A DNA stretch of 64,000 nt from Macrostomum lignano (lineage: Eukaryota): positions 62,001 to 126,000 of the forward strand of contig NIVC01001338.1 in NCBI GenBank assembly GCA_002269645.1. Reading direction: 5' to 3'. This document shows, in pieces, positions 7,855 through 50,703 of this stretch. Numbering within the stretch: the stretch's first letter is position 1; every line of letters begins with the position of its first letter. Under the pieces are notes generated by a model. It ran no database searches, was not told the origin of the DNA, and worked only from the letters and a program-made list of their open reading frames with translations. Position numbers and translations under genes: made by a program.

Positions 7855-7964
7855 GGGTGCTTCTGTCTGGGATTGGCTTGGTGCTTGGATTGTCCTGGCT
7901 TTGCCTTGGCAACCGCGGCTTTGAGCATCAATGGAAACAATAATCTTGTATTGGAAGTTTTTGG

Positions 7965-12964: not shown

Positions 12965-13011
<47 letters not shown>

Positions 13012-13061
13012 GTCTGTCTGTCTGTCTGTCTGCCTGTCTGTCTGTCTGTCGTCTGTCTGTC

Positions 13062-13100
<39 letters not shown>

Positions 13101-13177
13101 GTCTGTCTGTCTGTCTGTCTGCCTGTCTGTCTGTCTGTCGTCTGTCTGTCGTCTGTCTGTCTGTCTGTCTGCCTGCC

Positions 13178-13210
<33 letters not shown>

Positions 13211-13308
13211 GCCTGGTCGTCTGTCTGTCTGCCTGTCTGTCTGCCTGTCTGTCTGTCGTCTGTCTGTCTGTCTGCCTGCCTGCCTGCCTGTCTGTCTGTC
13301 TGTCTGCC

Positions 13309-13344
<36 letters not shown>

Positions 13345-13407
13345 GTCTGTCTGTCTGTCTGTCTGCCTGCCTGCCTGCCTGTCTGCCTGCCTGTCTGTCT
13401 GCCTGCC

Positions 13408-13450
<43 letters not shown>

Positions 13451-14929
13451 GTATGTCTGTCTGGATACATATCCCAATCAATCGCCCCGAAACCGTCTCC
13501 AACCCGTACCCCACTCACTACAGTAGCCATCATCATCGCTAGAATCGTCTCCAACACCGCTAGCCTTCTCATCGCCAAGACAGCCAACAGAGGAATCTCG
13601 GCGAGCGAAAGCGTGCCCGAACAGATCGAACACGAGGCCTTTATCGCCTGTGAAGCGGGCGGTGCAGCCCAGGTAGGCCAGCGGACAGACTGTCTCAGCC
13701 GCGAGGGTGTCGCTGCCGGACAAGTTGGGATACAGGCGGAGGTGCTGCGCTGCGTGCCAAGAGAATTCGTCGCGACGAACAACCTGTGCGGCAGAGAGCG
13801 GAGGAGATTAGAATAACCGCATTACTAATGGTTACCTTGAAAAGATCTTTTGATAAACTTTATAAAACACATCAACTAAAGATAATAAAAGGATTGACTT
13901 AGTAACAAAGTACAGAATCTTGCAGATTCTTGAGTACAGACACCTGTAAGATACTTGAGTACAGACACCTGTAAGATACTAGAGTACAGACACCTGTAAG
14001 ATACTTGAGTACAGACACCTGTAAGATACTAAAGTACAGACACCTGTAAGATACTTGAGTACAGACACCTGTAAGATACTAGAGTACAGACCCCTGTAAG
14101 ATACTTGAGTACAGACACCTGTAAGATACTAGAGTACAGACCCCTGTAAGATACTTAAGGAGACAGAACGGAACCCGCAGCTCACCTGAGAGCATACCCG
14201 AGCACCGCGCGGACGCCAATCGTGGGCCCTCGGACAGCCGTCGCCAGGATTAACAAACGCCAAGTGATGATTGACAAGCTGCGGCAGCGGAGGCTGGTGA
14301 TGATGATGATTTGGCGACTCGGCAAGGCAGCTCAGAATTCGAGCGGACAGGCCGCTGCTTGGCAGTCGATGAGGCTGCTCGGCTGATTTCTCCCCAGCCT
14401 CTTCTTTATCATCATCACGATCGCCGAGTCCTTGACTACGGTAGCCTAGCAACTGGTCTAGCGGCTCACTGCCAGCCCGATGACCTTCTCCATAATTGTT
14501 GTTATTAGCAACGGACTTGGCAGGCTTACTGTTACTGTAATTATTATTACTAGACGCCGGCCGACGCTCTTTAAGCATCAGCGACAGGCAGAGGGCGCTG
14601 TCGAAATTCGATCGACAAAATCCGTCAACATCCGGACAGGCGACGCTCATGGATGACGTCACGAACTCCGGGAACAGCATCAGCGGGCACTGGACAATGG
14701 AGGCCGGACAGACAGACAGGTGACTGGCCAACTGCTGACGAGGCAATCGCCTGTCGCAACCGTAAGCAACATTGATGCAGGGGACCAGCTGCCTGGGACA
14801 AATCAACAGGTGATCCGGCCGTTTGCAGGCGTGGAAACAGGCACTGCAGTCGCAGTGAATCATGTCGCAGCCGAGGTCGCAGCTGCGCCTGTGACAGCGG
14901 CAGCAATGATTGGCGCAGATGTTGTCCAT
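12350..14929 (-). CDS. FBXO30/FBXO40-like F-box protein with an N-terminal TRAF-type zinc finger (~486 aa)
   Basis: Exons 14929-14186, 13783-13519, 12801-12350 (phases 0 and 1 compatible). N-terminal HCCRC..CD..C.C.A.FHACK..DH.LICP...VPCINVAYGC...HL.VCPASIV; CSQVVRRDEFSWH...CPLAYLGC; F-box LMTLPDELIDRILSYLDSHALLCLRSTCRAMR; C-terminal MSKHLASCEFN. Same order of motifs as in FBXO30/40. Confidence 0.88.
12830..13460. repeat. (TCTG)n microsatellite in intron 2 of the F-box gene
   Basis: Seen directly. Confidence 0.97.
13930..14158. repeat. 25-bp minisatellite (GAGTACAGACACCTGTAAGATACTT) in intron 1 of the F-box gene
   Basis: Seen directly. Confidence 0.95.
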
Positions 14930-22943: not shown

Positions 22944-25500
22944 TCAATCGCACCCCGCATTCGCAGTCAGCAGCCGCAGCGACACACTGCCATGCTCCGA
23001 AGCTCCGTAGCCGACAGCACTGTCGCCACTCAACATCTGACAGTCGATGCCGCTATCGCCGTCGCAGAAGCTGCCGCCGCCGCCGCCGCTGTCGGTGTAG
23101 TACAGCCCGGCCCCGCCGCCGCTGTAGCCGCCGCCGCCGCCCGCCGCTCCGTAGCACTCCTGCGTCGCGTCAAACTCCGTCGTGTAGCCGCCGCCGCCTC
23201 CGCCGCCGCCAAATCCGCCGTCACCGCCGCGGAGGTTGCCAGCTAGCGAGCCGTTGAACCCGCCGACGCCGCCAAGCCAGCCGTTGGCGAGGCCGCCGCC
23301 TCCGTCGCCGTCGATAGCGCTCCGACGCGGATTGACCGGCGAGCCGACGACCCAGCCAGCGCCGCAGCCGCCGTGGTTGCTGAAGTCGAGCTGGCTGGCT
23401 GTCGACATGCTGGCCGGTTCGTTGAACCCCGGCTGGCCGAATGTGCCGCCCACGCCGTGGAAGCCGTCTCCTGTCGATGAGCCGTGCGAGTTGCTGCCGT
23501 TGCTGCTGCTGGTGCCGTGCATGCCTGGGGCGAAGGAGTCGGTGACATCTTCATCTTCATACTTCTCACGGCCTTATTCTTATTCTCGGCTTATGCCTCA
23601 CTCATACCTCATTTTCTTTTAGGGATTTCTTATCCCTACTCCTCAAAGTTGTTTTAAGACGCAAAATCTTAAATTACAAATCTGATGTTCGAGCAGTATG
23701 GTTCTCTAATCCAAAAATCAAATCCAAAATTGAAAATCCCATATGTCAACTCCCAAATTCAAAATTTCAAATCCCGAATCCCAACTCCTAAATCCCAAAT
23801 CCCAAATTCCAAATTCCAAATTCCAAATCCCGAATTCCAAATACCAAATCCCAAATCTCTAATCCGAAATCCGAAGTCCCAACTCCCAAATTCCAAATCC
23901 CAGATTCCAAATCTCAAACCCAAAATCCCGAATCCCAAATCCCATATCCCAAGTCCCAAATTCCAACTCCCTACTTCCAAATCCCGAATCCCAAATCCCA
24001 ACTCCCAAATCCCAAATTCCAAATCCCAGATTCCAAATCTCAAATCCCAAACCCCAAATCCCAAATCCCATTCAAAATCTCACCGCCAGCCCAGTATGTG
24101 GCGCCGCCGCCCCCGCCAGCGGCCAGGTACAACCTTGCTGGTTCGCCGTCGCCAGTGGCGCCTCTGTACACAAAGCTGCCGCCGCCGCCTCCGCCGCCTC
24201 GACTTCCGACGGCGCTGCCGGTGGCGCCTCCAGCCTGGCCGACCACTACAGACAGCTGGACGCCGATCGGGAGAACAAACTTGCCAGTCGCCATGGCGCC
24301 GAGACCGCCGGGCTGGTTCTCCTCGAAGCTTCGACCGCCTTTGGCGCCGCGAGCGGTCAGCAGGTAGCAACCAGCCACGGGTGTGGTGGCAGTTTGAACC
24401 GAGCCAGTGCGACCTGTGCTGCTGTCTGAGTGTGCCGATCGGATCAGATTAGAGTGGGATCAAAGTAGATGGGGATCAAAGTGAAACGTAATCAATTTTC
24501 CCACATGTACGGCGCTTTGGATCATATCAGGATGGGATCATATTGGGATCACATCGGGATGGGATCACATCGGGATGGGATCATATCGGGATGGGATCAT
24601 ATCGGGATGGGATCATATTAGGATCACATCGGGATGGGATCATATCGGGATGGGATCATATCGGGATGGGATCATATCGGGATGGGATCATATCGGGATG
24701 GGATCATATCGGGATGGGATCATATCGGGATAGGATATCATATACTCTCTGAGATCTCTTACTCGAAAAGTTCATATAGACGCTTTGACCGAGTAGATTT
24801 CGAAAATTCTCCTCCAGCCACACCTGGCTGCCGGAGTTTCCGAGTAGACGATGTTGGAAGCTGTGGGCAGGCGGGCTGTCTGCAAGGTTGCGTATGATCA
24901 CCAGCTGGCAGAGTTGGCCAGTCAGGACTGCGGCTGAGCACCCCAGTTGTCGACAGCGAGCTACGCAGTCGAGTTCCCGGTTGCCAGCAAAGCTGGTGAC
25001 GTTGATCACCTGGCTGCTGATTGTGGAGTCCAGCTCGAGCAAGGCGCTGCTTGACAGGCGGTAGTTGCGGCATCGAGTTGGTGAGGCTGCCAGGACCAGA
25101 GTGACTGAAACTCGATAATTATTACAGATTGAGATTGATTGCTAATTCCATAATTAGGTAGTTAATTGAGCTAATTAAGGTAATTGATAGGTAGGTAGGT
25201 AAGTAGGCAGGTAGGTAGATAGGTAGGCAGGTAAGTAGGCAGGTAGGTCGGTAAGTAGGCAGGTAGGCAGGTAGGTAGGCAGGTAGGTAGGTAGGTAGGC
25301 AGGCAGGAAGGCAGGTAGGTAGGTAGGCAGGAAGGCCGGTAGGTAGGCAGGTAGGTAGGTAGGCAGGTAGGTAGGTAAGTAGGCAGGTAGGCAGGTAGAT
25401 AATAGGTTAGACGCATGTGCAACTTACACAGCTGGTTCGCACTCAAGATCACGAGAGCAGATGCAGCACAGAGCGTAGAATAGAATTTCCAGGGTAGCAT
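22944..25500 (-). CDS. Secreted PAN/apple-like + ALK/LTK-type glycine-rich domain protein (441 aa), no TM or kinase
   Basis: Exons 25500-25428, 25104-24763, 24413-24084, 23524-22944, all phase-1 GT-AG. Signal peptide; PAN-like [22 protein letters not shown]; glycine-rich domain [86 protein letters not shown]. Confidence 0.85.
23750..24075. repeat. CCAAAT(T)/CCCAAAT low-complexity repeat in an intron
   Basis: Seen directly. Confidence 0.9.
24520..24730. repeat. 16-bp minisatellite (CATATCGGGATGGGAT) in an intron
   Basis: Seen directly. Confidence 0.95.
25185..25400. repeat. (GTAG/GCAG)n microsatellite in an intron
   Basis: Seen directly. Confidence 0.95.
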
Positions 25501-26034
25501 ACTCTAACGGCTTAGGACTCAGAGTTGGGAGACTACCTAAGCAGCAGCAACAATGGGACGGAATTCTAAAACAAGCGGCTGCAGACAGTGTAATGAGCGA
25601 TGCCGGGGCGGTGTGCCTATTAAAGGTATGGATTTTACTGCAGCTTATTAATAATTCAAGTCGATCCCTGCATCCCTAGGCTCAATTGTTGCAATAAGAC
25701 AGGGTTTTTGACAATTTATTTTTTTGACGTTTTATACACAGGCTGGAGGGGCTGATACTACACGTGTGTAGTATTACATGTAGCTAAGCACTAGCATTAG
25801 CAATTTTGTAATTGATTGCAACTTGTATGTAGAACCCTGTGCAAGCTTACATGTACCTCAGAAGAATGCCGCCTAACTAGATATGAATACCTGTATCGGC
25901 TGACCTTTAATTGAGACATGTACATCACGAAAGCATGTACATCATGCAGACGGAAGTGATGAAGTGAATTACCTTATTTAGTCTGACCTTATTTAAGTAT
26001 GAAGCTAACTTTAGTTCCTTACTGAGTCTTACAT

Positions 26035-29000
26035 GCAGCTTACTGAGCCAATTAAATTTAGCTTACTGAGCTAACTACATGTAGCTTACTGAGCTAACTA
26101 CATGTAGCTTACTGAGCTAACTACATGTAGCTTACTGAGCTAACTACATGTAGCTTACTGAGCCAATTACATGTAGCTTACTGAGCTAACTACATGTAGC
26201 TTACTGAGCTAACTACATGTAGCTTACTGAGACAATTACATGTAGCTTACTGAGCTAACTACATGTAGCTTACTGAGCCAATTAAATGTAGCTTACTGAG
26301 CTAACTACATGTAGCTTACTGAGCTAACTACATGTAGCTTACTGAGCTAACTACATGTAGCTTACTGAGACAATTACATGTAGCTTACTGAGCTAACTAC
26401 ATGTAGCTTACTGAGCCAATTACATGTAGCTTACTGAGCCAATTACATGTAGCTTACTGAGCCAATTACATGTAGCTTACTGAGCCAATTACATGTAGTT
26501 TACTGAGCCAATTACATGTAGCTTACTGAGCCAATTACATGTAGCTTACTGAGACAATTACATGAAGCTTACTGAGCCAATTACATGTAGCTTACTGAGC
26601 CAATTACATGTAGCTTACTGAGCCAATTACATGTAGCTTACTGAGCTAACTACATGTAGCTTACTGAGCCAATTACATGTAGCTTACTGAGCTAACTACA
26701 TGTAGCTTACTGAGACAATTACATGTAGCTTACTGAGCCAATTACAGGTAGTTTTCTTCGGCAATTACATGTAGCTTACTGAGCCAATTACATGTAGCTT
26801 ACTGAGCTAACTACATGTAGCTTACTGAGCCAATTACATGTAGCTTACTGAGCCAATTACATGTAGCTTACTGAGCCAATTACATGTAGCTTACTGAGCC
26901 AATTACATGTAGCTTACTGAGCCAATTACATGTAGCTTACTGAGCTAACTACATGTAGCTTACTGAGACAATTACATGTAGCTTACTGAGCTAACTACAT
27001 GTAGCTTACTGAGACAATTACATGTAGCTTACTGAGCCAATTACATGTAGCTTACTGAGACAATTACATGTAGCTTACTGAGCTAACTACATGTAGCTTA
27101 CTGAGCCAATTACATGTAGCTTACTGAGCCAATTACATGTAGCTTACTGAGCCAATTACATGTAGCTTACTGAGCCAATTACATGTAGCTTACTGAGCCA
27201 ATTACATGTAGCTTACTGAGCCAATTACATGTAGCTTACTGAGACAATTACATGTAGCTTACTGAGCCAATTACATGTAGCTTACTGAGCTAACTACATG
27301 TAGCTTACTGAGACAATTACATGTAGCTTACTGAGCCAATTACATGTAGCTTACTGAGCCAATTACATGTAGCTTACTGAGCCAATTACATGTAGCTTAC
27401 TGAGCTAACTACATGTAGCTTACTGAGCCAATTACATGTACTTACTGAGCCAATTACATGTAGCTTACTGAGCCAATTACATGTAGCTTACTGAGCCAAT
27501 TACATGTAGCTTACTGAGCCAATTACATGTAGCTTACTGAGCCAATTACATGTAGCTTACTGAGCCAATTACATGTAGCTTACTGAGCCAATTACATGTA
27601 GCTTACTGAGCCAATTACATGTAGCTTACTGAGCCAATTACATGTACTTACTGAGCCAATTACATGTAGCTTACTGAGCCAATTACATGTAGCTTACTGA
27701 GCCAATTACATGTAGCTTACTGAGCCAATTACATGTAGCTTACTGAGCCAATTACATGTAGCTTACTGAGCCAATTACATGTAGCTTACTGGGCTAACTA
27801 CATGTAGCTTACTGAGACAATTACATGTAGCTTACTGAGCTAACTACATGTAGCTTACTGAGCTAACTACATGTAGCTTACTGAGCCAATTACATGTAGC
27901 TTACTGAGCTAACTACATGTAGCTTACTGAGCCAATTACATGTAGCTTACTGAGCCAATTACATGTAGCTTACTGAGCCAATTACATGTAGCTTACTGAG
28001 CCAATTACATGTAGCTTACTGAGCCAATTACATGTAGCTTACTGAGCTAACTACATGTAGCTTACTGAGACAATTACATGTAGCTTACTGAGCTAACTAC
28101 ATGTAGCTTACTGAGACAATTACATGTAGCTTACTGAGCTAATTACATGTAGCTTACTGAGCTAATTACATGTAGCTTACTGAGCCAATTACATGTAGCT
28201 TACTGAGCCAATTACATGTAGCTTACTGAGCCAATTACAGGTAGTTTTCTTCGGCAATTACATGTAGCTTACTGAGCCAATTACATGTAGCTTACTGAGC
28301 CAATTACATGTAGCTTACTGAGCCAATTACATGTAGCTTACTGAGCCAATTACATGTAGCTTACTGAGCCAATTACATGTAGCTTACTGAGCTAACTACA
28401 TGTAGCTTACTGAGCCAATTACATGTAGCTTACTGAGCCAATTACATGTAGCTTACTGAGCCAATTACATGTAGCTTACTGAGCCAATTACATGTAGCTT
28501 ACTGAGCCAATTACATGTAGCTTACTGAGCTAACTACATGTAGCTTACTGAGCCAATTACATGTAGCTTACTGAGCTAACTACATGTAGCTTACTGAGAC
28601 AATTACATGTAGCTTACTGAGCTAACTACATGTAGCTTACTGAGCTAACTACATGTAGCTTACTGAGCTAACTACATGTAGCTTACTGAGCTAACTACAT
28701 GTAGCTTACTGAGCTAACTACATGTAGCTTACTGAGCTAACTACATGTAGCTTACTGAGCCAATTACATGTAGCTTACTGAGCCAATTACATGTAGCTTA
28801 CTGAGCCAATTACATGTAGCTTACTGAGCCAATTACATGTAGCTTACTGAGCCAATTACATGTAGCTTACTGAGCCAATTACATGTAGCTTACTGAGCCA
28901 ATTACATGTAGCTTACTGAGCCAATTACATGCAGCTTACTGAGCCAATTACATGTAGCTTACTGAGACAATTACATGTAGCTTACTGAGCCAATTACATG

Positions 29001-32000
29001 TAGCTTACTGAGCCAATTACATGTAGCTTACTGAGACAATTACATGTAGCTTACTGAGCCAATTACATGTAGCTTACTGAGACAATTACATGTAGCTTAC
29101 TGAGCCAATTACATGTAGCTTACTGAGCCAATTACATGTAGCTTACTGAGCTAACTACATGTAGCTTACTGAGCCAATTACATGTAGCTTACTGAGCTAA
29201 CTACATGTAGCTTACTGAGACAATTACATGTAGCTTACTGAGCTAACTACATGTAGCTTACTGAGCTAACTACATGTAGCTTACTGAGCTAACTACATGT
29301 AGCTTACTGAGCTAACTACATGTAGCTTACTGAGCTAACTACATGTAGCTTACTGAGCCAATTACATGTAGCTTACTGAGCCAATTACATGTAGCTTACT
29401 GAGCCAATTACATGTAGCTTACTGAGCCAATTACATGTAGCTTACTGAGCCAATTACATGTAGCTTACTGAGCCAATTACATGTACTTACTGAGCCAATT
29501 ACATGTAGCTTACTGAGCCAATTACATGTAGCTTACTGAGCCAATTACATGTAGCTTACTGAGCCAATTACATGTACTTACTGAGCCAATTACATGTAGC
29601 TTACTGAGCCAATTACATGTAGCTTACTGAGCCAATTACATGTAGCTTACTGAGCCAATTACATGTACTTACTGAGCCAATTACATGTAGCTTACTGAGC
29701 CAATTACATGTAGCTTACTGAGCCAATTACATGTAGCTTACTGAGCCAATTACATGTAGCTTACTGAGCCAATTACATGTAGCTTACTGAGCCAATTACA
29801 TGTAGCTTACTGAGCCAATTACATGTAGCTTACTGAGCCAATTACATGTAGCTTACTGAGCCAATTACATGTAGCTTACTGAGCCAATTACAGGTAGTTT
29901 TCTTCGGCAATTACATGTAGCTTACTGAGCCAATTACATGTAGCTTACTGAGCCAATTACATGTAGCTTACTGAGCCAATTACATGTACTTACTGAGCTA
30001 ATTACATGTAGCTTACTGAGCTAATTACATGTAGCTTACTGAGCCAATTACATGTAGCTTACTGAGCCAATTACATGTAGCTTACTGAGCCAATTACAGG
30101 TAGTTTTCTTCGGCAATTACATGTAGCTTACTGAGCCAATTACATGTAGCTTACTGAGCCAATTACATGTAGCTTACTGAGCCAATTACATGTAGCTTAC
30201 TGAGCCAATTACATGTAGCTTACTGAGCCAATTACATGTAGCTTACTGAGCTAACTACATGTAGCTTACTGAGCCAATTACATGTAGCTTACTGAGCCAA
30301 TTACATGTAGCTTACTGAGCCAATTACATGTAGCTTACTGAGCCAATTACATGTAGCTTACTGAGCCAATTACATGTAGCTTACTGAGCTAACTACATGT
30401 AGCTTACTGAGCCAATTACATGTAGCTTACTGAGCTAACTACATGTAGCTTACTGAGACAATTACATGTAGCTTACTGAGCTAACTACATGTAGCTTACT
30501 GAGCTAACTACATGTAGCTTACTGAGCTAACTACATGTAGCTTACTGAGCTAACTACATGTAGCTTACTGAGCTAACTACATGTAGCTTACTGAGCTAAC
30601 TACATGTAGCTTACTGAGCCAATTACATGTAGCTTACTGAGCCAATTACATGTAGCTTACTGAGCCAATTACATGTAGCTTACTGAGCCAATTACATGTA
30701 GCTTACTGAGCAATTACATGTAGCTTACTGAGCCAATTACATGTAGCTTACTGAGCTAACTACATGTAGCTTACTGAGACAATTACATGTAGCTTACTGA
30801 GCCAATTACATGTAGCTTACTGAGCCAATTACATGTAGCTTACTGAGCCAATTACATGTAGCTTACTGAGCCAATTACATGTAGCTTACTGAGCCAATTA
30901 CATGTAGCTTACTGAGCCAATTACATGTACTTACTGAGCCAATTACATGTAGCTTACTGAGCCAATTACATGTAGCTTACTGAGCCAATTACATGTAGCT
31001 TACTGAGCCAATTACATGTAGCTTACTGAGCCAATTACATGTAGCTTACTGAGCCAATTACATGTAGCTTACTGAGCCAATTACATGTAGCTTACTGAGC
31101 CAATTACATGTAGCTTACTGAGCCAATTACATGTAGCTTACTGAGCCAATTACATGTAGCTTACTGAGCCAATTACATGTAGCTTACTGAGCCAATTACA
31201 TGTAGCTTACTGAGCCAATTACATGTAGCTTACTGAGCCAATTACATGTAGCTTACTGAGCCAATTACATGTAGCTTACTGAGCCAATTACATGTAGCTT
31301 ACTGAGCCAATTACATGTAGCTTACTGAGCCAATTACATGTAGCTTACTGAGCCAATTACATGTAGCTTACTGAGCCAATTACATGTAGCTTACTGAGAC
31401 AATTACATGTAGCTTACTGAGCCAATTACATGTAGCTTACTGAGCCAATTACATGTAGCTTACTGAGACAATTACATGTAGCTTACTGAGCCAATTACAT
31501 GTAGCTTACTGAGACAATTACATGTAGCTTACTGAGCCAATTACATGTAGCTTACTGAGCCAATTACATGTAGCTTACTGAGCTAACTACATGTAGCTTA
31601 CTGAGCCAATTACATGTAGCTTACTGAGCTAACTACATGTAGCTTACTGAGCAATTACATGTAGCTTACTGAGCTAACTACATGTAGCTTACTGAGCTAA
31701 CTACATGTAGCTTACTGAGCTAACTACATGTAGCTTACTGAGCTAACTACATGTAGCTTACTGAGCTAACTACATGTAGCTTACTGAGCTAACTACATGT
31801 AGCTTACTGAGCCAATTACATGTAGCTTACTGAGCCAATTACATGTAGCTTACTGAGCCAATTACATGTAGCTTACTGAGCCAATTACATGTAGCTTACT
31901 GAGCCAATTACATGTAGCTTACTGAGCCAATTACATGTAGCTTACTGAGCCAATTACATGTAGCTTACTGAGCCAATTACATGTAGCTTACTGAGCCAAT

Positions 32001-34455
32001 TACATGTAGCTTACTGAGCCAATTACATGTAGCTTACTGAGCCAATTACATGTAGCTTACTGAGCCAATTACATGTAGCTTACTGAGCCAATTACATGTA
32101 GCTTACTGAGCCAATTACATGTAGCTTACTGAGCCAATTACATGTAGCTTACTGAGCCAATTACATGTAGCTTACTGAGCCAATTACATGTAGCTTACTG
32201 AGCCAATTACATGTAGCTTACTGAGCCAATTACATGTAGCTTACTGAGCCAATTACATGTAGCTTACTGAGCCAATTACATGTAGCTTACTGAGCCAATT
32301 ACATGTAGCTTACTGAGCCAATTACATGTAGCTTACTGAGCCAATTACAGTAGTTTTCTTCGGCAATTACATGTAGCTTACTGAGCCAATTACATGTAGC
32401 TTACTGAGCCAATTACATGTAGCTTACTGAGCCAATTACATGTAGCTTACTGAGCTAATTACATGTAGCTTACTGAGCTAATTACATGTAGCTTACTGAG
32501 CCAATTACATGTAGCTTACTGAGCCAATTACATGTAGCTTACTGAGCCAATTACATGTAGCTTACTGAGCCAATTACATGTAGCTTACTGAGCCAATTAC
32601 ATGTAGCTTACTGAGCCAATTACATGTAGCTTACTGAGCCAATTACATGTAGCTTACTGAGCCAATTACATGTAGCTTACTGAGCCAATTACATGTAGCT
32701 TACTGAGCTAATACATGTAGCTTACTGAGCCAATTACATGTAGCTTACTGAGCCAATTACATGTAGCTTACTGAGCCAATTACATGTAGCTTACTGAGCC
32801 AATTACATGTAGCTTACTGAGCCAATTACATGTAGCTTACTGAGCTAACTACATGTAGCTTACTGAGCCAATTACATGTAGCTTACTGAGCTAACTACAT
32901 GTAGCTTACTGAGCTAATTACATGTAGCTTACTGAGCTAACTACATGTAGCTTACTGAGCTAACTACATGTAGCTTACTGAGCTAACTACATGTAGCTTA
33001 CTGAGCTAACTACATGTAGCTTACTGAGCTAACTACATGTAGCTTACTGAGCCAATTACATGTAGCTTACTGAGCCAATTACATGTAGCTTACTGAGCCA
33101 ATTACATGTAGCTTACTGAGCCAATTACATGTAGCTTACTGAGCCAATTACATGTAGCTTACTGAGCCAATTACATGTAGCTTACTGAGCCAATTACATG
33201 TAGCTTACTGAGCCAATTACATGTAGCTTACTGAGCCAATTACATGTAGCTTACTGAGCCAATTACATGTAGCTTACTGAGCCAATTACATGTAGCTTAC
33301 TGAGCCAATTACATGTAGCTTACTGAGCCAATTACATGTAGCTTACTGAGCCAATTACATGTAGCTTACTGAGCTAACTACATGTAGCTTACTGAGCTAA
33401 CTACATGTAGCTTACTGAGCCAATTACATGTAGCTTACTGAGCCAATTACATGTAGCTTACTGAGCCAATTACAGGTAGTTTTCTTCGGCAATTACATGT
33501 AGCTTACTGAGCCAATTACATGTAGCTTACTGAGCCAATTACATGTACTTACTGAGCCAATTACATGTAGCTTACTGAGCCAATTACATGTAGCTTACTG
33601 AGCCAATTACATGTAGCTTACTGAGCCAATTACATGTAGCTTACTGAGCCAATTACATGTAGCTTACTGAGCCAATTACATGTAGCTTACTGAGCCAATT
33701 ACATGTAGCTTACTGAGCCAATTACAGGTAGTTTTCTTCGGCAATTACATGTAGCTTACTGAGCCAATTACATGTAGCTTACTGAGCCAATTACATGTAG
33801 CTTACTGAGCCAATTACATGTAGCTTACTGAGCCAATTACATGTAGCTTACTGAGCCAATTACATGTAGCTTACTGAGCTAACTACATGTAGCTTACTGA
33901 GCCAATTACATGTAGCTTACTGAGCTAACTACATGTAGCTTACTGAGACAATTACATGTAGCTTACTGAGCTAACTACATGTAGCTTACTGAGCTAACTA
34001 CATGTAGCTTACTGAGCCAATTACATGTAGCTTACTGAGCCAATTACATGTAGCTTACTGAGCCAATTACAGGTAGTTTTCTTCGGCAATTACATGTAGC
34101 TTACTGAGCCAATTACATGTAGCTTAATGAGCCAATTACATGTAGCTTACTGAGCCAATTACATGTAGCTTACTGAGCCAATTACATGTAGCTTACTGAG
34201 CCAATTACATGTAGCTTACTGAGCCAATTACATGTAGCTTACTGAGCCAATTACATGTAGCTTACTGAGCCAATTACATGTAGCTTACTGAGCTAACTAC
34301 ATGTAGCTTACTCAGCTAATTACATGTAGCTTACTGAGCCAATTACATGTAGCTTACTGAGCCAATTACATGTAGCTTACTGAGCCAATTACATGTAGCT
34401 TACTGAGCCAATTACATGTAGCTTACTGAGCCAATTACATGTAGCTTACTGAGCT
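26035..34455. repeat. 23-bp satellite array (GAGCCAATTACATGTAGCTTACT), about 366 units
   Basis: Head-to-tail units without spacers; variants GAGCTAACT, GAGACAATT and GAGCTAATT; palindromic core TACATGTA. Confidence 0.99.
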
Positions 34456-34765
34456 CAGGTTATTGAGCTCATCTAGCTTAGCCCTGCATTTTTTATAAAT
34501 TAAACTTTTTAATAGATAATTAAGTCATCAAAAGCCATCTTGTTTATGCCCATTTTGTTTTATCAGCAGATGGATTAACTTCGTTTATTTAAAGCTCTCA
34601 ATATGGGTTGATTCTTGCGCTCTCGATGTCGCAACTTGCCACCAAAATCACTGATCAAAATTGTCTCTTTTCATGTTGTTCGCTTTCCAGCTCTTAAGCA
34701 ATGCTGAGATCATTAGGTAGTTAGCTGGTTCGCAAGATTCGGTGGATCCGATCAGTTCCAGTTAA

Positions 34766-35151
34766 TTAACAGCTGTAGCAGGGACAACGTTCGTCCACAT
34801 AATTGCTGTAATACTTTTGTTCGCTGACGCAGTACCTGCGGTAGCGACCGCCTTGATGGATGCAGTGGATTGTACAGATGATTTCCCAGGTGTTTCTAGG
34901 GTCTGAAAAAAACACAAATAGTTTACTAGGCATTGGTTAGAAAGATTTAGAAAGAATTTTGAAACATTTGCATCTTTAGTCCGACTCTAAAAACGGTTCA
35001 ACTTACACACGACATTGCTGGGCAGGCGTCTCTTGTTGGCCAGGTGGTCGCTAGCGGCCGGTTCAATCAGCGGATGGTTCCTGCTGATAGGCGAGGCACT
35101 AGAAGCAGCAAAGCCCAACAGACAGACGGTACCAAGCAGCAGCAGATTCAT
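34766..35151 (-). CDS. Small secreted Cys-rich defensin-like peptide precursor (93 aa)
   Basis: Exon 35151-35007 (145 nt, donor GTAAGT), 104-bp intron, exon 34902-34766 (TTTTTTCAG acceptor). Translation: MNLLLLGTVCLLGFAASSASPISRNHPLIEPAASDHLANKRRLPSNVVYPRNTWEIICTIHCIHQGGRYRRYCVSEQKYYSNYVDERCPCYSC*. Confidence 0.8.
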
Positions 35152-38100
35152 GCTAGATCTTTCGAATTGAGAGGTTGCAGTTTTGCCAAGTTATCTTTGC
35201 GAGTGTTGGCTCCGCTCTCCCGGATCTGCCGCTCCGCTTAAAAACGCAGCCGGGAATCACGCGCCTGCCAAGTGCTGCGTCGGCGTTGCCAATCGTCGGC
35301 GCTGAAGCTGGATCGAGTTGGAAGCTCAAACAAACCTACACCAATTTCCATGAAGGTACCAGCATGGAATTGGCGCCAAAATGGAAGCTTGCCATTGTAA
35401 TTGGCGCCGCCTTCGCGGGTGCTCTTCTACAATCGCGCGTAAACGGTAATTATAAGCAATCAAAAACGCCTACGTATCTTCAGCTGCAGAAGCAGAGTGA
35501 GGGAGCGATCGGATGCCTGCATCAGCTTAATTTGAAGATTAAAGAGTCGGCTCGTCCTTAGAAAATTCTAGAACAGTGTTTACACAGGGAAGCTGCAGCT
35601 TTACTTGTAAACAAGAGTCACCTCGCCCCTCTGGGCCAAGGCGGCCCTGGTGCAAGTAAATGCATGCACAGAGCTGCTTTCCAGCGGTCAAGACGGATGT
35701 CCGGGACGTGAGCCGCGCTTTCCTGCTGCAGGAGCCAAAAGGACCAAACGAAGCACCGCATCATCAAGCAAGGGACAACTGGCAACCCCGTGGAATCCAC
35801 TGACTTCACTGACGGGTCCCAAATCAACTCTGCGTCTGGCTGTGGCTATCGCCGGAGTCCGGGGGGATCTGTGGCAAACTTCCCAATGTTCTTCTAACTG
35901 CACATTGAACACAATCAATGACGTAAGAGTCAGATGCGTTTACCGCTGAGATAAGGCACTCGCCCAGAGTCGGGTAATTCTAGCACACGACCAGGCGTCG
36001 AACGGCCGCGGATTGGACAGCCGGTTGCGAGGAGATGAATCAGTTCTTGTCCTCCCTTTCTCTGCGTGGGAAAAACTAAAAGACACCTGCACACCAGAAT
36101 CAGGGAGCACTGGCTCAATTAACCGTTGGCAATCCAAACTCACCTCTTAGATTGCAGCAGTTGCTCCAATTGTAAAGCTGAGGAATGCTTCAAAGACATT
36201 GACCATTGCTCATTTGACTGCATTAAATCTCAGTCCCCCAGCCTAACACTCAACTTCAATATACGAGCGTAGTAGTGGCGCTGGTCATGTTCTCGGCGTG
36301 TTCTAAGACATTCTGTGTAGTTGGCTGCAACCCAAACCACCCGTCCCTGTGGACCTTGCCTTTCGATTACGGACTAAATTTATATAAATGTCATCACATT
36401 CATTCACTCGCAACCTACTCGTTAGTAATTAAATAAACCTCAACATGCACACTGTAGTGCGACACGCGTTATTTTCATTAAACCAATGTTGATTTTCGGT
36501 TTCCTCTTCTTGCTGCTTGCCAAGCGAGCTAGCTTACAAGATCACGGATAATATTCTTACTTATCTACTAGTGCCCTGAATTTAGTCGCACGAATTCTAG
36601 CATCGCGACAATGCAGCAGAATCTTTTTGTTCAGCGTTTTCTGACTTTGATGTATCTCTCCATCAAACTATATACTTAGCTTACAGCAACAGTCAATAGA
36701 AGCGAGTAAATTGGAGTCAAAAAGACAACTTTTGACTCCAATTTGGAGTCAAAGACAAACAAAGTCGACAATTTTTTTCAACTGAATGAAAAGCAGAAAA
36801 ACAAGCACATGACAAACGACTGTTTCAAATGCAGATTTTTAAAAGACTCGCTATGCGCAGTGTCGCTTTGCGTCTATTCAGTGAGTGAGGAGCCATTGGG
36901 ACAGAACAACAACTCTCAGAATAGAGAATAATAGATTTTTGTCGGGGGGCTGCTAGCCAGACAATGGTGGATCCTGCATCCTGGATGCTGAAACAGAAGA
37001 CATATCTTAACTACAGAGCTGAAAGCAGAGACAATGCAGTAACCAATTAAATGACTGATTGTGCCGAACTCAAATGCAGCGCTGGAAGCGCCTAACGGAT
37101 CAACACAGTTTTTCCTCACAAAGCAAAACAACTCAAAGACTCGCTTTCTTGATCTGCACGGCATCTGTGAAGTCATTGCTATGCACTTTTGGTGACAATA
37201 ACACGCGCGTGGGATGCGTGGTAATGTCATTTTGGATATAAACACGAAACGGCAATTTGAACAATAACAAAGGGTAAATTTTATTTTTTGATGTTAGGTA
37301 GAAAAACATCAAAAACTGTTCAACAAAGAAATCGCATGTTAATCAGTTAATACCAGGCCTACACAGTAACGTCACTCAGAAAGAATATCAATCAGATTTC
37401 GACTGCCGCCAATGGTCACTTTCATCTTCTTTGACGGAGCAGCCTGCACACGTAGTGCGCTGTCGGTCTGGACAGGCTCTTGATAAGCATCCGCACATTC
37501 TTCCAATGTAGCTTCGCTTATTGTGGTTGGAGTTTGGACGAGCAAGCTTAACAATCTCATTAGTTTCGGAAACTGTATGATTCAGCGCCTGATCCACAGC
37601 CAGAGATGCCCTATACAAACTGCGATCACGACGCCTTGCAATAAGTAGCGTTTAACAGTTCGCTCACACTTTTGCCCAGTGATGAGCAAGATCTCCTGGA
37701 TAGTCTGGCCAAAGGCATCCTACAGGTGGCACGCTCTAGTTACTCTGCAGTTTAAAAGAAAAGTTGGCAACTGATTTGTCTAGATGCAAATGTGTTCACA
37801 GAGAAACATTATAATTATGGTGGGCAAAAGTACAGGTCAGACTACCTACCATTTGCAGCGGTCGGTTTACACCTTAGTAAGGCCTGCTTTCTCACTGACG
37901 TTCTTCATAAACTCAAGAAGATAGCGAAAGCCTCTAGCAGTTTTCTCGGAGAATCTATAGCGGTTCCCGTCTCGACTGTCTAATGGCTTGGGCATGAATG
38001 ACGTGCAAATCAAGTCGAACTCGCCGGATGTTACTCCTGAAATCTCACCATTCGGTATTGCTCCGTAGTTAACTAGAGGAAGCAGAACTTCTGCCACTGT

Positions 38101-42835: not shown

Positions 42836-43883
42836 ATATTGAATCTCTTGTTGCTATTATATCTATCTATTCTCTATCTTTAATTTGCAACTTAATATAA
42901 TAGGCCTAGCAATTGTTATATTAATTAAGTATATATTTTAATCATGTATAAATACTATGCAATTATTGAAATAATACAAAATATTATATTATATATAAAA
43001 ATATAACTGCAATAATATATTTAAAACAAATAATCTATATAAATTTTTTAAATTTTCTTTTTAAATTTTATTCCAGGTAGGTTTAGTAATAATATTACCT
43101 AACTAAAATAAGTTTAGCCTAATATGAAGCTACCCTGGTACCAATATTTTTAGTTTAATAATTCAAGTAACAATTAATCAATTTAATTATAAGCTACAAA
43201 AAAACTTGGAATATATCTAGGCCTATAGGCCTAAGCAAGCAACAAAGTGAACAAAGTATTGTGTACTTGGCCTAGGCTAGGTTTTATTTGCTTTATTTAA
43301 TAGATAAATATCTGCAATAAAAGCTTAAGAGAATGCTTTTTGTTTGGTTAGGGCCTAATCCGATTTTATTATAGTAGTACCTATCTAAGATTTGTAGATC
43401 TAGGCCAGATACTATACCCAATTACAATATTTATCATTACTGATAACTGATAAGATATAGGCCCCCTATAGAAATCAATGTTAGGCACCATTAATGAAAA
43501 TCTAAACTTCCATTAATGGCAAAAGTGTTGACTATAGTCTTGACTGTTTAACCAGTTTTAATGAATTTTTTCTATTTCTCTAAATTAGTACACTCAATGG
43601 CAGAGTCAATGGTTTAATACAATGCCAGACTTTTCCGGACGCCCCTCGTATATTAAAATTTGTTAATGTCATTAATCTTCCTATTCTAATCATTTATAGT
43701 ATAATTAAAAATTCACAATTGTAAAATGTAATGGGAAAAATTCTCACCTACTATATTTTTATAGTTGTGTTGTGGCCACAAGAGCAGTTGCTATCTGTAA
43801 GCATATGCAGTGAAAATTTCTGCAGAATAATCATCCATACATGTTTGCAGAAAATTGCATATAACCAACCAATAAGCAAATTA

Positions 43884-46800
43884 ATGGCTCTGCACCGACT
43901 TAGCTCAGCTTGCAATAGAATGTTTCTATCAGCATCAGTAGTGCAGACTGCCAGTGGACTACGCAGCCTGTCATCCGCAGGCGGACTGGCTGACAAATTC
44001 ACCAAGGCGCAGTCAGCTCTGCAGCGGCTCACTGAGGATCCCGGCAATGCTGCCAAGCTGAAGATCTACAGCCTGTATAAGCAGGCCACGGAGGGCAAGT
44101 GCACCAAGCCGAAGCCGGGATTCACCGATTTCGTCGGCCGAGCCAAATGGGACGCTTGGAGCGGCCTTGGGGACATGACCAAGGATCAGGCTATGCAGCA
44201 GTACATTGACCTGGTGGAGTCCATGGGCGGCAAGCTGGATGCTCCCGATACTACTGCCGATACTACTAATCCCGCCGATTCTAATACTGCGTCTGCTGAT
44301 TATAAGGTACAAGCTTATTGATTGTGAAATCTTTATTAAAATAACTGCATTTTTTGTTTTGCTGAAGATTTTTTGTCTGAAGATTTTCTAATGACATTTC
44401 TCTGCAAGATTAGCTGTCATGCGCTCACTGATAGGCAGCTTGCTCTGTAGCTGGCGCCCCCTCTGTAGCTGGCGCCCCCTCTGTAGCTGGCGCCCCCTCT
44501 GTAGTTGGCGCCCAACAACAACAACAAACAACAAAATACGCTGTCATGATGGTAAAAGTCAGCGTCACAGGGCGCGCTTCATGGCTTGGGCGCGAACAAA
44601 GGCCGCGCCACCGGCAGTGTCCGGGGCGCCGGCGTCAGCCAGCAGACAGTCGACATAACGCCGAGTTCGCGCTTGACCTCGCCGGTAGGGTGCCTGCAGC
44701 GTGAGCAGCAGCACCTCCTGCACCGGCTGTGGGCAGTACGACTCGGCGCGGATGAGATGGCCTGCGAGCTGGAGTCGCCGACGGCGCAGTAGATCACTTG
44801 GACGTGGCAGGCCAGCGCGGCGATAGAGTGCCGCGTTGGTGACTCGCTCGACGCCGATGTTGAAGGCGGCGCGCAGCAGACCAGCGTGCGCCGCATCGAC
44901 TTGCTGTTCGAGTGAGTCCGTCAGCGTCCAGGTCTCGGCGTTGTACAGCAGGACGGTCTCGATTACCGCCTGGAACAGCGCCGCCCTCTGGCGGTCCGGT
45001 AGGGCCTCGGACTGCAGGACTGCCCTCACAGAACGAAAGGCAGCCCAGGCAAGCCCGCGGCGGCGTCGCAGGTCCTCGCGAGCGTCTGGAACCAGACCGC
45101 CGAGGTAGACGAACTGCTGACATCGCGGGAGTTCGGTCGCCTGCCCGTCAGCGCCTCGGCAAAATATTGCAGCCTCGATGTCGTCCGGCACGCAGAGCAC
45201 AACGGTCTTCTGCGTGTTGACCACCAGGCCGACACTCGCCGCAACGGCAACCAGCCTGTCCAGCTGCCGTTGGGCGCCCTCGACGGTCGAGGACAGCAGG
45301 GCGAGGTCGTCGGCGTAGCCGACCAGTTGGCGCCCCCTCTGTAGTTGGCGCCCCCTCTGTAGCTGGCGCCCCCTCTGTAGCTGGCGCCCCTCTGTAGCTG
45401 GCGCCCCCTCTGTAGCTGGCGCCCCCTCTGTAGCTGGTGCCCCCTCTGTAGCTGGCGCCCCTTCTGTAGCTGGCGCCCCTTCTGTAGCTGGCGCCCCCTC
45501 TGTAGCTGGTGCCCCCTCTGTAGCTGGCGCCCCTTCTGTAGCTGGCGCCCCCTCTGTAGCTGGTGCCCCCTCTGTAGCTGGCGCCCCCTCTGTAGCTGTA
45601 GCTGGCCCCCTCTGTAGCTGGTGCCCCTTCTGTAGCTGGCGCCCCCTCTGTAGCTGGCGGCCCCTCTGTAGCTGGTGCCCCTTCTGTAGATGGCGCCCCC
45701 TCTGTAGCTGGCGCCTTCTCTGTAGCTGGCGCCCCTTCTGTAGCTGGTGCCCCCTCTGTAGCTGGCGCCCCTCTGTAGCTGGCGCCCCCTCTGTAGCTGG
45801 CGCCCCCTCTGTAGCTGGCGCCCCCTCTGTAGCTGGCGCCCCCTCTGTAGCTGGCGCCCCCTCTGTAGCTGGCGCCCCCTCTGTAGCTGGCGGCCCCTCT
45901 GTAGCTGGCGCCCCCTCTGTAGCTGGCGCCCCCTCTGTAGCTGGCGGCCCCTCTGTAGCTGGCGCCCCCTCTGTAGCTGGCGGCCCCTCTGTAGCTGGCG
46001 CCCCCTCTGTAGCTGGCGCCCCCTCTGTAGCTGGCGGCCCCTCTGTAGCTGGCGCCCCCTCTGTAGCTGGCGGCCCCTCTGTAGCTGGCGCCCCCTCTGT
46101 AGCTGGCGGCCCCTCTGTAGCTGGTGCCCCCTGTGTAGCTGGTGCCCCTTTAGTTGGCGCTCCTGGATATAGTTGGATTAAGTTTTAACTACTTTAACTA
46201 CTTCTAGCTACTAGTTGTAAAAATAAATTTAAGAACTATAAAAAGGGTCCGAGCGAGGTCTGTTTTTACATACGACATAATTATGTTTGCATGCACTCAA
46301 GGTTCAAATATCCGAATCTCAGTTACTGCAGCAATTCTCATTCGCATTGGTTTAAAAGACAATAAATGAAACGTTGCATTTTTAGCACTAAAAGTTTGTT
46401 TTGTCTTTATTTTTTTGGCGTTAATTAAAACCAAGATCTAACATTAACAACATCTAAGGTCAATTGAGAGGATTCCAATATTTACAATATATAAAGATTG
46501 TTAAATTTTCATGTTGCTACTGTAAGTAGACGATTGCGCAGAAACTTTATTATGTATTTTTATTTACTTTCAGGAAGCTCTAGTATCCATCTCGCCTAGC
46601 GGGGTGCTTTGGTTCACCCTGAATCGGCCAGCCAAGAAGAATGCCATCTCAACCGATCTATACGCTGAATGGTCCAAAGCGATGGAGCAGGCCGCCGCTG
46701 ACGACAAGGTCAAGGCTATGGTCATCACCGGTGCCGGGGAGTATTTCAGCTCCGGCAACGATTTGTCCAGCTTCACCAATTTAAAACCCGGCGTCACCAT

Positions 46801-48412: not shown

Positions 48413-50703
48413 CTATGAAATATGATTCCAATTTATGTTGTCCAGTTCCATCTGAAGTGCCAACATTGTTGGACTGGTGTGGTTCGCTAGCTGGTTAAAT
48501 AGCTGCTCAGCGCAATGTCGCACTGACTCAGAAACACCAATGTTGCTGCTGTTGCCGCAGCTGCGACTCGGCGAGCAATCTGGCAACAGGCTAATAATGA
48601 GCTTCTGCTCAGCAACCCACGCTTCAATGTCAGTCTGCGACCATTTATCACCGGCTGCAGTTTTCTGGCACCAGAGTCGGATTGAATCGATGCAACTAAG
48701 CGTCGAATCACTGTGTTGCACTGCCTGACTAGCCGCTCTGATGCTGACTGCCTTGAGTACAGCGTTCGTCACCAGATCGAATGAGCTTGAGTCTATTTGG
48801 CATTTACTAGTATCCGTCTTGACAGCTTTATCGAGCACCCTGTAAGCCATCAACGTGGCCAACTGCAATGACGAGTCAAGAAACGGCGCATAGAAGTGCA
48901 CAGGAAGTTGAAATTCTTTTCCGCTAGATCTACGAGTAGATGGAAAAGTCGTTGCTAAAGCCGATTTGGTGAACAGTTGCAGAGCCTCGCGATCTTCTGT
49001 GCCACCCCGAGCAGCCATGACCGTCAGCATCGCCCTCGTGTGCCTGATAGTCGACAGAAGATCCAGTAAAAAATCTGCTTGGTCGTTTAAACTTAGGCCG
49101 TCGTAGAGCTTGGCTAGAAGAGTTTCTGAAGGTACACCGCTGGCAGTCTTCAGGTTGATTCCCGCTGGCAGACGGTGCTCGAAAGCCCGACTCGCAACTG
49201 CCGGCATCGCAAATCGGACAGCTCGAGCGCAGGATTCGACCTGCGTCAGTCGGCCCTTGTCGCTGCTGCCCAGCAAAAAGCTTCTCAATCGTCCCGCGCC
49301 CTCAATAAATGCTAGACCGATCAACGTGTCGGGGTCTTGGGCTGTCAGCAGTCTCAGACGTTGCCGCATAACTTCCAGTCGTCCGCGTACGCTAATAAAT
49401 CCGAAACGACCGTCCACGCTTACTACAGTTCCGGTCCTGCTTCCGCTTGGTTGGGACGCTTTGACCGCTGCTGGCAGTTGGTCTAGTTGGAAAGCTTTCC
49501 AGCCGCGTTCACCGCTCGGAAATAAGTCTACCAGGTCTGACAGCAGCACAGGTTTTGTGACGTCTGCATAGTGCGGCGCGTTTTTGGTCAAATTAAAAAT
49601 ACGAGCGTACATATTAATGATGCTCCTATAATTATTGCTGTTTTCCCACTTACTGCCTTCATCATCTCGCCGTTCTAATTGATTGAGCTGCAGTCTCAGA
49701 CTGACAATTCGATCGGCTATGACTCCTGGCAGGCCGCGATCGACTCGTTCAAACGCTGATGCTGCTTCTATTCGATACGCCCAAGCGCTTGCCATTAAAA
49801 AACAAAGACAGCAAATGTAAATGCGTGTATCGCCAGGCAGATTATAAAGTTAAACGCGACATTAACGAAATCCGAAATTTCTTACTTATCATCTACATCA
49901 CTAGCATAAGTCGACATCTCAGACGCTTGCAGTCTTAGCGGCACAGTTATGTAATCGGCAGCTGGGTAAGTTGCGAGTTCGACTCCCGCCGGTAGGCCCA
50001 ATCCCGCCAGGTAGCCTAACAGTCGCTCGGACGCTTCACCATTCCTAGGCTTAGTGAATCGAGTGCTCAGCAGGCCGGTGTGCCTTCCTAGTAGGCGAGC
50101 CAGAGCCGGCTCCACCGCGATTGCCTCTCGTCCGAACAGGTCTCTGGCGGGGCTGGACCTCATGCATGACAGCGCCAGACTTGAGGCGGCTCGCATCCAA
50201 CTCTTGGCGCTAATTGAAGGCTCCGGTCTAACCAGCGCTTCAATTAGCGCGCTAGCGGCTTGCTGTTGAACCAAGCGCAACCGATCAACGCTGCCGTCTT
50301 TAAATCCGGTGCCTTCAACGCTCCACTGTAGGCTAGCGACTCGCTGGAAACTGCGACACACTTGCAGCGGCTCGTACTGGCTGCAGTTGTCAGCCCCAGC
50401 GAATCCCTTGAATGATTTTTGATCGACTACTTGCAAGGCACTTCTATTAGAGATCTCTGACTCCTTGTGACAGTCGATCCTGCCGATGTAAAATGCTGAG
50501 AGAGCCGCGGCTGCAGCCGACAGGAGCACCGTCAGAATGGCTCCCAGTAGCAGCAGACAGGCTGTCAGTTTTGAACGCTTACGACGAACTGGGAGTCGTT
50601 GAATATCGTCATCGGATTGACTTAATCTAATCGAGACGTTGTTATCCTCATCCTGATTTGCTTCGTTTCTGGTGTGTAACGTTGGCGTCCTGAAAATTGA
50701 CAT
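48413..50703 (-). CDS. Divergent neprilysin/M13-like type II membrane protein lacking HExxH (probably 2 exons, 730 aa)
   Basis: The 273-aa and 460-aa ORFs join through a 98-bp intron (donor AA|GTAAGA at 49885, AAG acceptor at 49788). Cytoplasmic tail, RRKR, TM helix, then M13-like landmarks in order: VCRSFQRVASLQW, ALSCMRSS, ESCARAVRFAMPAVA, LPVHFYAPFL, LMAYRVLD (HExxH position), SKC, RLWCQ, PDCSPSRSC. Confidence 0.6.

Follow-up and report, generated by a model that had tools for sequence, protein, structure and literature searches.

The gene described here lies in a 64,000-nucleotide stretch of DNA from the free-living flatworm Macrostomum lignano (assembly GCA_002269645.1, contig NIVC01001338.1, positions 62,001 to 126,000 of the forward strand), which is referred to below as the window and in whose numbering coordinates are given. 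Positions 34766-35151, read on the minus strand, are the two-exon gene Mlig033545.g1, a real and already annotated gene for a small secreted peptide. Exon 1 (35151-35007, 145 nt as read from the sequence) starts with the ATG at 35151 and is followed by a phase-1 intron of 104 bp (35006-34903), which has a GTAAGT donor and the acceptor TTTTTTTCAG, and whose 3′ end consists of a pyrimidine tract and AG (TTTGTGTTTTTTTCAG). Exon 2 (34902-34766) carries the entire six-cysteine domain of some 45 residues (Cys58, Cys62, Cys73, Cys88, Cys90, and Cys93) together with the TAA stop codon. The phase-1 splice creates the codon TAC for Tyr49 and gives a prepropeptide of 93 amino acids, MNLLLLGTVCLLGFAASSASPISRNHPLIEPAASDHLANKRRLPSNVVYPRNTWEIICTIHCIHQGGRYRRYCVSEQKYYSNYVDERCPCYSC; without splicing, the frame opened by exon 1 would meet a stop codon 54 amino acids on, ahead of all six domain cysteines. 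The spliced product matches GenBank PAA69241.1 with 100% identity (BOX15_Mlig033545g1, “hypothetical protein”, Macrostomum lignano, contig NIVC01001338.1). Since the GenBank annotation of M. lignano was built from a genome-guided transcriptome that combines de novo transcripts with RNA-seq (PMC5730564), the splice predicted here is that of a transcript-derived model, and splicing across the 104-bp intron, as proposed in an earlier reading made from the sequence alone (the sequence-only reading), is thereby borne out.

The precursor has a prepropeptide layout. The predicted signal peptide covers amino acids 1 to approximately 19/20 (MNLLLLGTVCLLGFAASSA/S; 35092-35151, minus strand), with a hydrophobic N-terminus (Kyte–Doolittle 9-mer means of 1.9-2.7 over residues 1-9) that gives way to the small residues SSAS; the cleavage point is approximate. 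A positive SignalP 4.1 call (Y) has been published for Mlig033545g3, a 95%-identical copy of the gene (PMC10414684, S5 file), and within the signal region this copy differs from the window copy only at residue 7. The putative propeptide PISRNHPLIEPAASDHLAN (35026-35091, minus strand) ends in the dibasic sequence K40-R41-R42, after which the precursor would be cleaved, and the end of exon 1 (35007-35025, minus strand) encodes LPSNVV, the N-terminal tail of the presumed mature peptide, and the first base of Tyr49. The peptide that follows KR is 52 amino acids long (51 after KRR) and contains 7 Tyr, 6 Arg, and 6 Cys, with a net charge of +3 (+2 after KRR), so that these computed properties agree with the mature peptide of about 52 residues, rich in Arg and Tyr and with a net charge of about +3, that had been claimed.

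One paralogue of the gene, Mlig029134, encodes a protein of the same length (93 amino acids) with 52% identity, and its intron interrupts the same codon in the same phase, with a length of 85 bp versus 104 bp and a sequence that is unalignable. The cysteine frame C-x3-C-x10-C-x14-C-x-C-x2-C is identical in both paralogues, all six cysteines are invariant, and so are the C-terminal sequence E-R-C-P-C-x-S-C and the basic motif N39-K40-R41 (within ANKR). The two parts of the precursor differ markedly in their rate of change. The leader (signal peptide and propeptide through A-N-K-R) is approximately 70% identical between the paralogues and the mature part approximately 40%, and the ratio of nonsynonymous to synonymous substitution rates (dN/dS, Nei–Gojobori) is 0.40 overall, 0.25 in the leader (dN 0.18), and 0.39 in the mature part (dN 0.69, with dS saturated). 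The comparison points to constraint on a protein-coding family whose leader is conserved and whose mature peptide changes fast on a fixed cysteine scaffold. The feature is more than a chance reading frame, because the paralogue keeps the reading frame, the position and phase of the intron, the KR site, and the six cysteines, with a dN/dS of about 0.4.

Two further contigs carry a copy that is 98-99% identical to the gene (g2 and g3, at loci L001 and L002). Within the coding sequence, five amino-acid changes and two silent changes separate the window copy from the duplicates, and the proteins are 95% identical; the net charge is +3 in the window copy and +5 in the duplicate copy, and five nonsynonymous plus two synonymous changes are too few for a selection test. 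The mature peptide accounts for three of the five substitutions (E55K, K78N, and D85A), each of which alters its charge. Such near-identical copies fit the large duplicated fraction that has been reported for the DV1 genome (PMC5730564). No second copy of the gene was found inside the window. Beyond these loci, word-index searches across 5.8 billion clusters, using either the single sequence or a full-length profile, returned M. lignano models only, and an exhaustive HMMER search of 1.84 billion representatives with a profile of the mature peptide recovered the two known clusters, two translated tandem repeats (P0006 and P0007, rejected as relatives for this reason), and no other relative. A wider superfamily sharing the leader was also considered and rejected, as the profile of the full precursor added nothing but P0009, a poor gene model of the paralogue from ML2. 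P0009 and P0005 (UniRef A0A1I8G7U5 and A0A1I8GCU8, respectively) are older ML2-assembly models of the paralogue that read through the 5′ untranslated region (UTR); the automatic names of P0005 and P0009 are “Secreted protein” and “SCP domain-containing protein”, and the SCP label has no visible basis in the 144-residue sequence. In the databases searched, the family appears only in M. lignano, as two paralogous loci and their near-identical duplicates.

AlphaFold models of the 52-residue peptide and of the mature peptide of the paralogue were computed from three-sequence alignments. For the window peptide, three helices (residues 10-23, 35-38, and 43-46) but no strands are predicted (predicted local distance difference test, pLDDT, 79.5; predicted template modeling score, pTM, 0.60); for the paralogue, the helices lie at residues 3-23, 30-35, and 43-46, again without a strand (pLDDT 68.2). 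In both models, the long helix holds C-x3-C, and the C-P-C-x-x-C tail is non-helical, a predicted layout that corresponds to what a cysteine-stabilized-helix (CSH) arrangement needs. The resemblance to CSH peptides lies in the occurrence of C-x3-C and then C-x-C in the right order, invariant in the paralogue, and in the predicted placement of the first pair of cysteines in a helix and of the second outside it; the pairing itself is presumed for the flatworm peptide, and the motif is common to unrelated families, indicating bracing and not kinship. A Foldseek search of the window model against the PDB gave AtLURE1.2 (PDB 5Y9W/5YAH), a defensin-like (DEFL) signaling peptide of plants, as the two best matches, with a template modeling score of 0.64 normalized by target over 41 columns; the match is not significant (E = 4.5-6.8, probability 0.16 for the best), sequence identity is 20%, and the model of the paralogue gave no matches in the same search.

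The KR(R) site is one of two candidate processing sites in the precursor. A furin-type motif, R68-Y-R-R71 (34835-34846, exon 2, minus strand), lies just ahead of Cys73 and fits R-x-R-R, within the furin consensus R-x-K/R-R; it is present in all three Mlig033545 copies, the window copy included. ProP 1.0, as published for the 95%-identical copy, called exactly one site, after RYRR, and the listed product, YCVSEQNYYSNYVAERCPCYSC, has 22 amino acids and begins with Tyr72 (PMC10414684, S5 file). A cut at this position would leave either a two-chain, disulfide-linked peptide or a free C-terminal peptide of 22 residues. We regard this course of processing as quite improbable, since the paralogue has RYYYSR at the corresponding position, the site is one residue ahead of Cys73 within a domain that is probably locked by disulfides, and the basic motif that is conserved is ANKR. 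Cleavage at KR would still be favored over cleavage at RYRR, because ANKR is invariant in the paralogue where RYRR is replaced, and because RYRR ends one residue short of a cysteine of the probably disulfide-locked domain; the argument for processing at NKR is thus one of sequence conservation. In the prepropeptide that the sequence-only reading had proposed, with cleavage at NKR, the spliced gene, the secretion signal (by the published SignalP call), and the dibasic site conserved in the paralogue all hold, and the cleavage itself is the part that the published prediction for the near-identical copy does not back, as ProP chose RYRR.

The same reading had assigned the peptide to the mussel-type defensins by aligning it by eye with the eight-cysteine defensin MGD-1. 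The MGD-1 sequence that it used is an exact match to 1FJN_A, and Smith–Waterman alignment reproduces its register of CTIHC, GRYRRYC, and RCPCYSC, pairing C-T-I-H-C with C-H-R-H-C, G-R-Y-R-R-Y-C with G-R-C-G-G-Y-C, and R-C-P-C-Y-S-C with R-C-T-C-Y-R-C, with a gap of seven residues. MGD-1 Cys21 faces a tyrosine in this alignment and MGD-1 Cys4 is unmatched, in line with the claim that two cysteines are missing and that one of them is replaced by Tyr. The alignment score is 48, compared with 27.6 ± 5.5 for shuffled sequences (p = 0.006; p = 0.033 when the cysteines are kept fixed). A profile comparison with hhalign against five solved CS-alpha-beta defensins (a profile of the PDB sequences of MGD-1, BmKDfsin3, micasin, oyster defensin, and eurocin) gave the same register, with P = 0.001-0.005 and a probability of only 7-19%; the observed score was reached in 1.3% of column shuffles, and in 3.3% when the cysteine columns were kept fixed. 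BLASTP against MGD-1 aligned the last 15 residues only (E = 0.035 in a single comparison). Like MGD-1 (1FJN) and other PF01097 defensins, the peptide has C-x3-C and then C-x-C downstream, and like the eight-cysteine MGD-1 it has a further cysteine at +3 (R-C-x-C-Y-x-C), so that the final extra C-x2-C is matched as well. In the window copy, the second helix cysteine is preceded by His, giving the C-x2-H-C motif, and the 10 residues between this cysteine and the next lie within the defensin range; like MGD-1, the peptide is small, cationic, and secreted. The exon of the cysteine domain borders on a phase-1 intron in the defensin genes of arthropods and molluscs (PMC6435467), and the phase-1 intron ahead of the unsplit exon 2 with all six cysteines agrees with this gene structure, although the argument is a weak one, since introns in phase 1 often accompany secreted domains.

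These nominal values are, however, suggestive at best, because the comparison partner was picked after the resemblance had been seen, and the similarity is not significant for the paralogue, which scores 32 against MGD-1 (p = 0.10, and 0.36 with the cysteines fixed). No match to Pfam Defensin_2 (PF01097) was found at E ≤ 10 in the four sequences scanned, and Pfam reported nothing for the precursor, its near-identical copy, the paralogue, or either mature peptide beyond sub-threshold, meaningless matches to Peptidase_C3G (E = 0.15-0.17). Searches of PDB sequences with the single sequence (phmmer) and with the profile retrieved no solved defensin at E ≤ 10, although fungal, mollusc, and arthropod defensins find each other easily; in a control search, MGD-1 alone retrieved six other defensins at E < 1e-3, including scorpion, fungal, oyster, and tick defensins. 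The defensin pattern C-X4-15-C-X2-H-C-X6-9-G-X-C-X4-9-C-X-C (PMC6435467) is followed only in its C-x3-C and C-x-C elements, as the flatworm peptide has no cysteine before C-x3-C, no G-x-C, and a loop of 14 residues before C-x-C, compared with 4-9 in the pattern and 7 in MGD-1. The N-terminal GFGC, which is invariant in the five solved defensins and lies in the region by which many antimicrobial members of the family bind lipid II, is absent from the peptide; at 52 amino acids, the peptide is longer than MGD-1 (39), its paralogue is nearly neutral in charge, and no β-sheet is predicted for either paralogue. In CS-alpha-beta defensins, an α-helix packs against an antiparallel β-sheet of two or three strands, and disulfides connect C-x3-C (i, i+4) with C-x-C (j, j+2). 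The flatworm peptide is also preceded by an N-terminal propeptide with KR, whereas in the precursors of mussel defensins an acidic extension is found at the C-terminus. A survey of 33 flatworm species by hidden Markov models and BLAST, which included both M. lignano assemblies, reported no CS-alpha-beta peptides in flatworms (PMC10414684). Membership of the mussel-type defensins, as it had been claimed, is not supported, given a marginal alignment, the lack of a Pfam or PDB match to a defensin at E ≤ 10, a cysteine frame that departs from the published pattern, and a helix-only prediction; the defensin reading has weak support, and the peptide cannot be demonstrated to belong to the CS-alpha-beta defensins of mussels and arthropods.

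Set against these results, the idea behind the original alignment, namely that the peptide is a true but highly diverged CS-alpha-beta homologue of the MGD type that has lost its first and loop cysteines and has re-paired the two orphaned ones, appears rather unlikely. It draws on the reproducible register, on the matching C-x3-C, C-x-C, and C-x2-C elements, on the intron phase, and on the fact that the top Foldseek matches are defensin-like LURE peptides; yet these matches are not significant and concern one model of two, and a peptide of this family would have to lack HMM-level similarity to its relatives, the GFGC N-terminus, and any predicted β-strand. A new disulfide between the two orphaned cysteines, as the sequence-only reading had suggested, is possible. 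Somewhat less probable again is the specific form of this idea, in which the peptide would be the first CS-alpha-beta-derived defensin lineage in Platyhelminthes, too diverged for homology surveys, with the N-terminal disulfide lost and a new bond from the strand cysteine to the C-terminal cysteine. If true, such a lineage would refute the published conclusion that flatworms lack CS-alpha-beta peptides (PMC10414684) and would provide an example of a re-wired defensin scaffold. A second family name, ShKT, comes from the automatic UniProt name of the near-identical copy A0A267ER24, which UniRef lists (P0001) as “ShKT domain-containing protein”. ShKT domains have six cysteines ending in C-x3-C-x2-C that are paired 1-6, 2-4, and 3-5. 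The flatworm peptide resembles them in its six cysteines, in its terminal C-x2-C, and in its all-helical prediction, but its C-terminal spacing is C-x-C-x2-C, no match to Pfam ShK (PF01549) was found at E ≤ 10 in the window copy, the near-identical copy, or the paralogue, and Foldseek, at E ≤ 10, listed no ShK-type structure for either of the two models, which are of moderate confidence. The window copy of identical length and the paralogue are not so named. An ShKT-domain peptide is very improbable here, and the name is treated as a borderline automatic assignment.

The reading that we favor, and to which we give about an even chance, is that Mlig033545.g1 encodes a fast-evolving secreted effector peptide with a CSH motif, with host defense (an antimicrobial-like role) placed first among its functions, and without demonstrable membership of the mussel-type defensins. 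By analogy, the combination of a conserved leader, a fast-changing mature part, and a fixed cysteine scaffold is typical of extracellular peptides that act on foreign or rapidly co-evolving targets, and it is this rate pattern that makes a secreted effector, with host defense first, the most likely role. Host-defense peptides and toxins combine a conserved leader with a variable mature part, and in classical neuropeptide precursors the pattern is reversed. The diatom diet of M. lignano and its habitat, intertidal sand that is rich in microbes, are the other reason for ranking host defense first; taken as a role of its own, host defense is a plausible candidate that falls somewhat short of even. 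The 95%-identical copy BOX15_Mlig033545g3 has been listed as no. 530 among the flatworm antimicrobial peptide (AMP)-like peptides (PMC10414684, S5 file), with a positive SignalP call and 54.5% of 11 AMP predictors positive (6/11). The likeness to the helminth AMP-like peptides of Irvine et al. 2023 is qualified by the fact that this entry was filed at the step “Ungrouped”, that it was modeled and scored as a 22-residue fragment, and that ungrouped and cysteine-rich candidates were dropped before assay in that survey (PMC10414684, 2023).

In the mechanism envisaged under this effector reading, the precursor would enter the secretory pathway, where an enzyme of the Kex2/prohormone-convertase type would cut after KR(R) and release a Tyr/Arg-rich peptide of 51-52 residues and approximately 6.2 kDa. 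Two disulfides would hold the C-x3-C helix against the C-terminal C-P-C segment, forming the CSH motif, and a third disulfide would probably join Cys73 to the C-terminal Cys93. The mature peptide would then act as an extracellular effector, with host defense as the first candidate role. Several observations weigh against this account. The confidence of the AlphaFold models is moderate (pLDDT 79.5 and 68.2), the five models disagree, and the disulfide pairing is a putative one; the site called by ProP lies inside the cysteine domain and not after NKRR. The AMP-predictor score of 54.5% is at the bottom of the range of the survey and was computed on the 22-residue fragment, and the charge is modest, with a nearly neutral paralogue (+1, isoelectric point 7.8), which is atypical for cationic AMPs. 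The identifiers Mlig033545 and Mlig029134 and the peptide strings were absent from the supplements of M. lignano studies and from the full-text literature searched, which yielded no record of expression, induction, or activity. Text matches to “RCPCHSC” in the literature were rejected, as the string is an unrelated acronym. Finally, a fast-evolving mature peptide fits seminal-fluid, pheromone, or toxin-like peptides too.

This last point leads to an endogenous role in signaling or reproduction, as a neuropeptide or hormone, a water-borne pheromone, or a seminal-fluid peptide cut by a prohormone convertase at KR in a regulated secretory cell. We consider such a role unlikely, though not strongly so. 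The layout of the precursor is prohormone-like, with a signal peptide, a spacer, a conserved KR, and a C-terminal peptide that ends at the stop codon, and the predicted fold is compact, helical, and disulfide-locked; the low net charge of the paralogue points the same way, and restriction to one species together with fast evolution would fit reproductive proteins, which are described as rapidly evolving in Macrostomum (PMC7336406, PMC8662610). At the amino-acid level, however, the mature part changes approximately four times faster than the leader, the reverse of what is typical of neuropeptide precursors, no amidation signal is present, the gene identifiers and peptide strings are absent from the supplements of a prostate-specific transcript screen, and the database searches returned no related peptide from other flatworms. 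A signaling role is kept in view because the charge is modest and variable (+2/+3 here, +5 in the duplicate, and +1 in the paralogue) and because no expression record was found.

The gene model is already public, and a near-identical copy is already in a supplementary list of AMP-like peptides; what is new is the set of full-domain peptide boundaries, the comparison of paralogue and intron, the rate asymmetry, and the explicit negative tests of family membership. With CS-alpha-beta peptides reported absent from flatworms, a species-restricted, fast-evolving, six-cysteine secreted peptide with C-x3-C and C-x-C is a candidate for what free-living flatworms use instead, and it could also prove to be a very diverged defensin. 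A signaling or reproductive peptide would, by comparison, be one more lineage-specific orphan of limited general interest. RNA interference, in situ hybridization, and transgenesis are available in M. lignano, and the role of the peptide is therefore directly answerable.

On the minus strand upstream of the gene, a TATA-like box, TTTTTAAG, can be read directly at 35237-35244, approximately 85-93 nt upstream of the ATG, and may serve as a promoter element. The paralogue has TATTTAAG at the matching position, and its annotated partial coding sequence, which is open from the 5′ end of the model, begins 29 nt downstream of the TATTTAAG box. Transcription of Mlig033545.g1 would accordingly be TATA-driven, and the stretch 35152-35220 is a probable 5′ UTR, with a start point placed by analogy with the model of the paralogue; at the duplicate loci L001 and L002, its sequence recurs with 98-99% identity. 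Downstream, an AATAAA polyadenylation signal that is probably used lies at 34584-34589 (minus strand), 176 nt past the stop codon.

A 23-bp satellite of 367 copies (8.4 kb; 26018-34454) adjoins the gene without entering it. Its edge is 312 bp from the stop codon, close to the distance of about 300 bp given earlier. On the duplicate contig NIVC01000440.1, the same site (L001 3697-4097) holds 17.5 satellite units (0.4 kb), a 21-fold shorter array, and the paralogous locus L003 has no 23-bp satellite units. Tandem repeats make up 15% of the M. lignano genome (PMC5730564). A functional link between gene and satellite was therefore rejected, and their adjacency is regarded as incidental, because the number of units differs 21-fold between the duplicates and tandem repeats are abundant. 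Past the satellite, three more tandem arrays, of a 7-bp unit (TCCCAAA), the 16-bp unit GGATCATATCGGGATG, and a TAGG-type unit, follow in the same order in the window (24003-24070, 24519-24736, and 25188-25398) and in the duplicate contig (L001 4725-4964, 5532-5834, and 6283-6388), so that the whole repeat-rich flank is syntenic.

On the plus strand, an open reading frame (ORF) at 35365-35561 starts 214 bp upstream of the ATG of the peptide gene; it begins with MELAPKWKLAIVIGAAFAGALLQSRVNG, which is signal-peptide- or membrane-like, and continues into GTAATT. The ORF is conserved in the near-identical duplicate loci and is missing from the GenBank annotation; as a divergent neighboring gene it was rejected, since it is not conserved at the paralogous locus. 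The nearest annotated neighbor is a gene of the ACBP/enoyl-CoA hydratase family approximately 8.7 kb upstream. An Rfam scan of the 64-kb window found nothing. The long ORFs at 43731-44321 on the plus strand and at 7486-8379, 12350-13477, and 14129-14929 on the minus strand are ordinary host exons, for which Pfam reports ACBP, WD40, F-box, and TRAF-type zinc finger domains. Two more long ORFs, on the minus strand at 48413-49795 and at 49882-50703, match no Pfam family.

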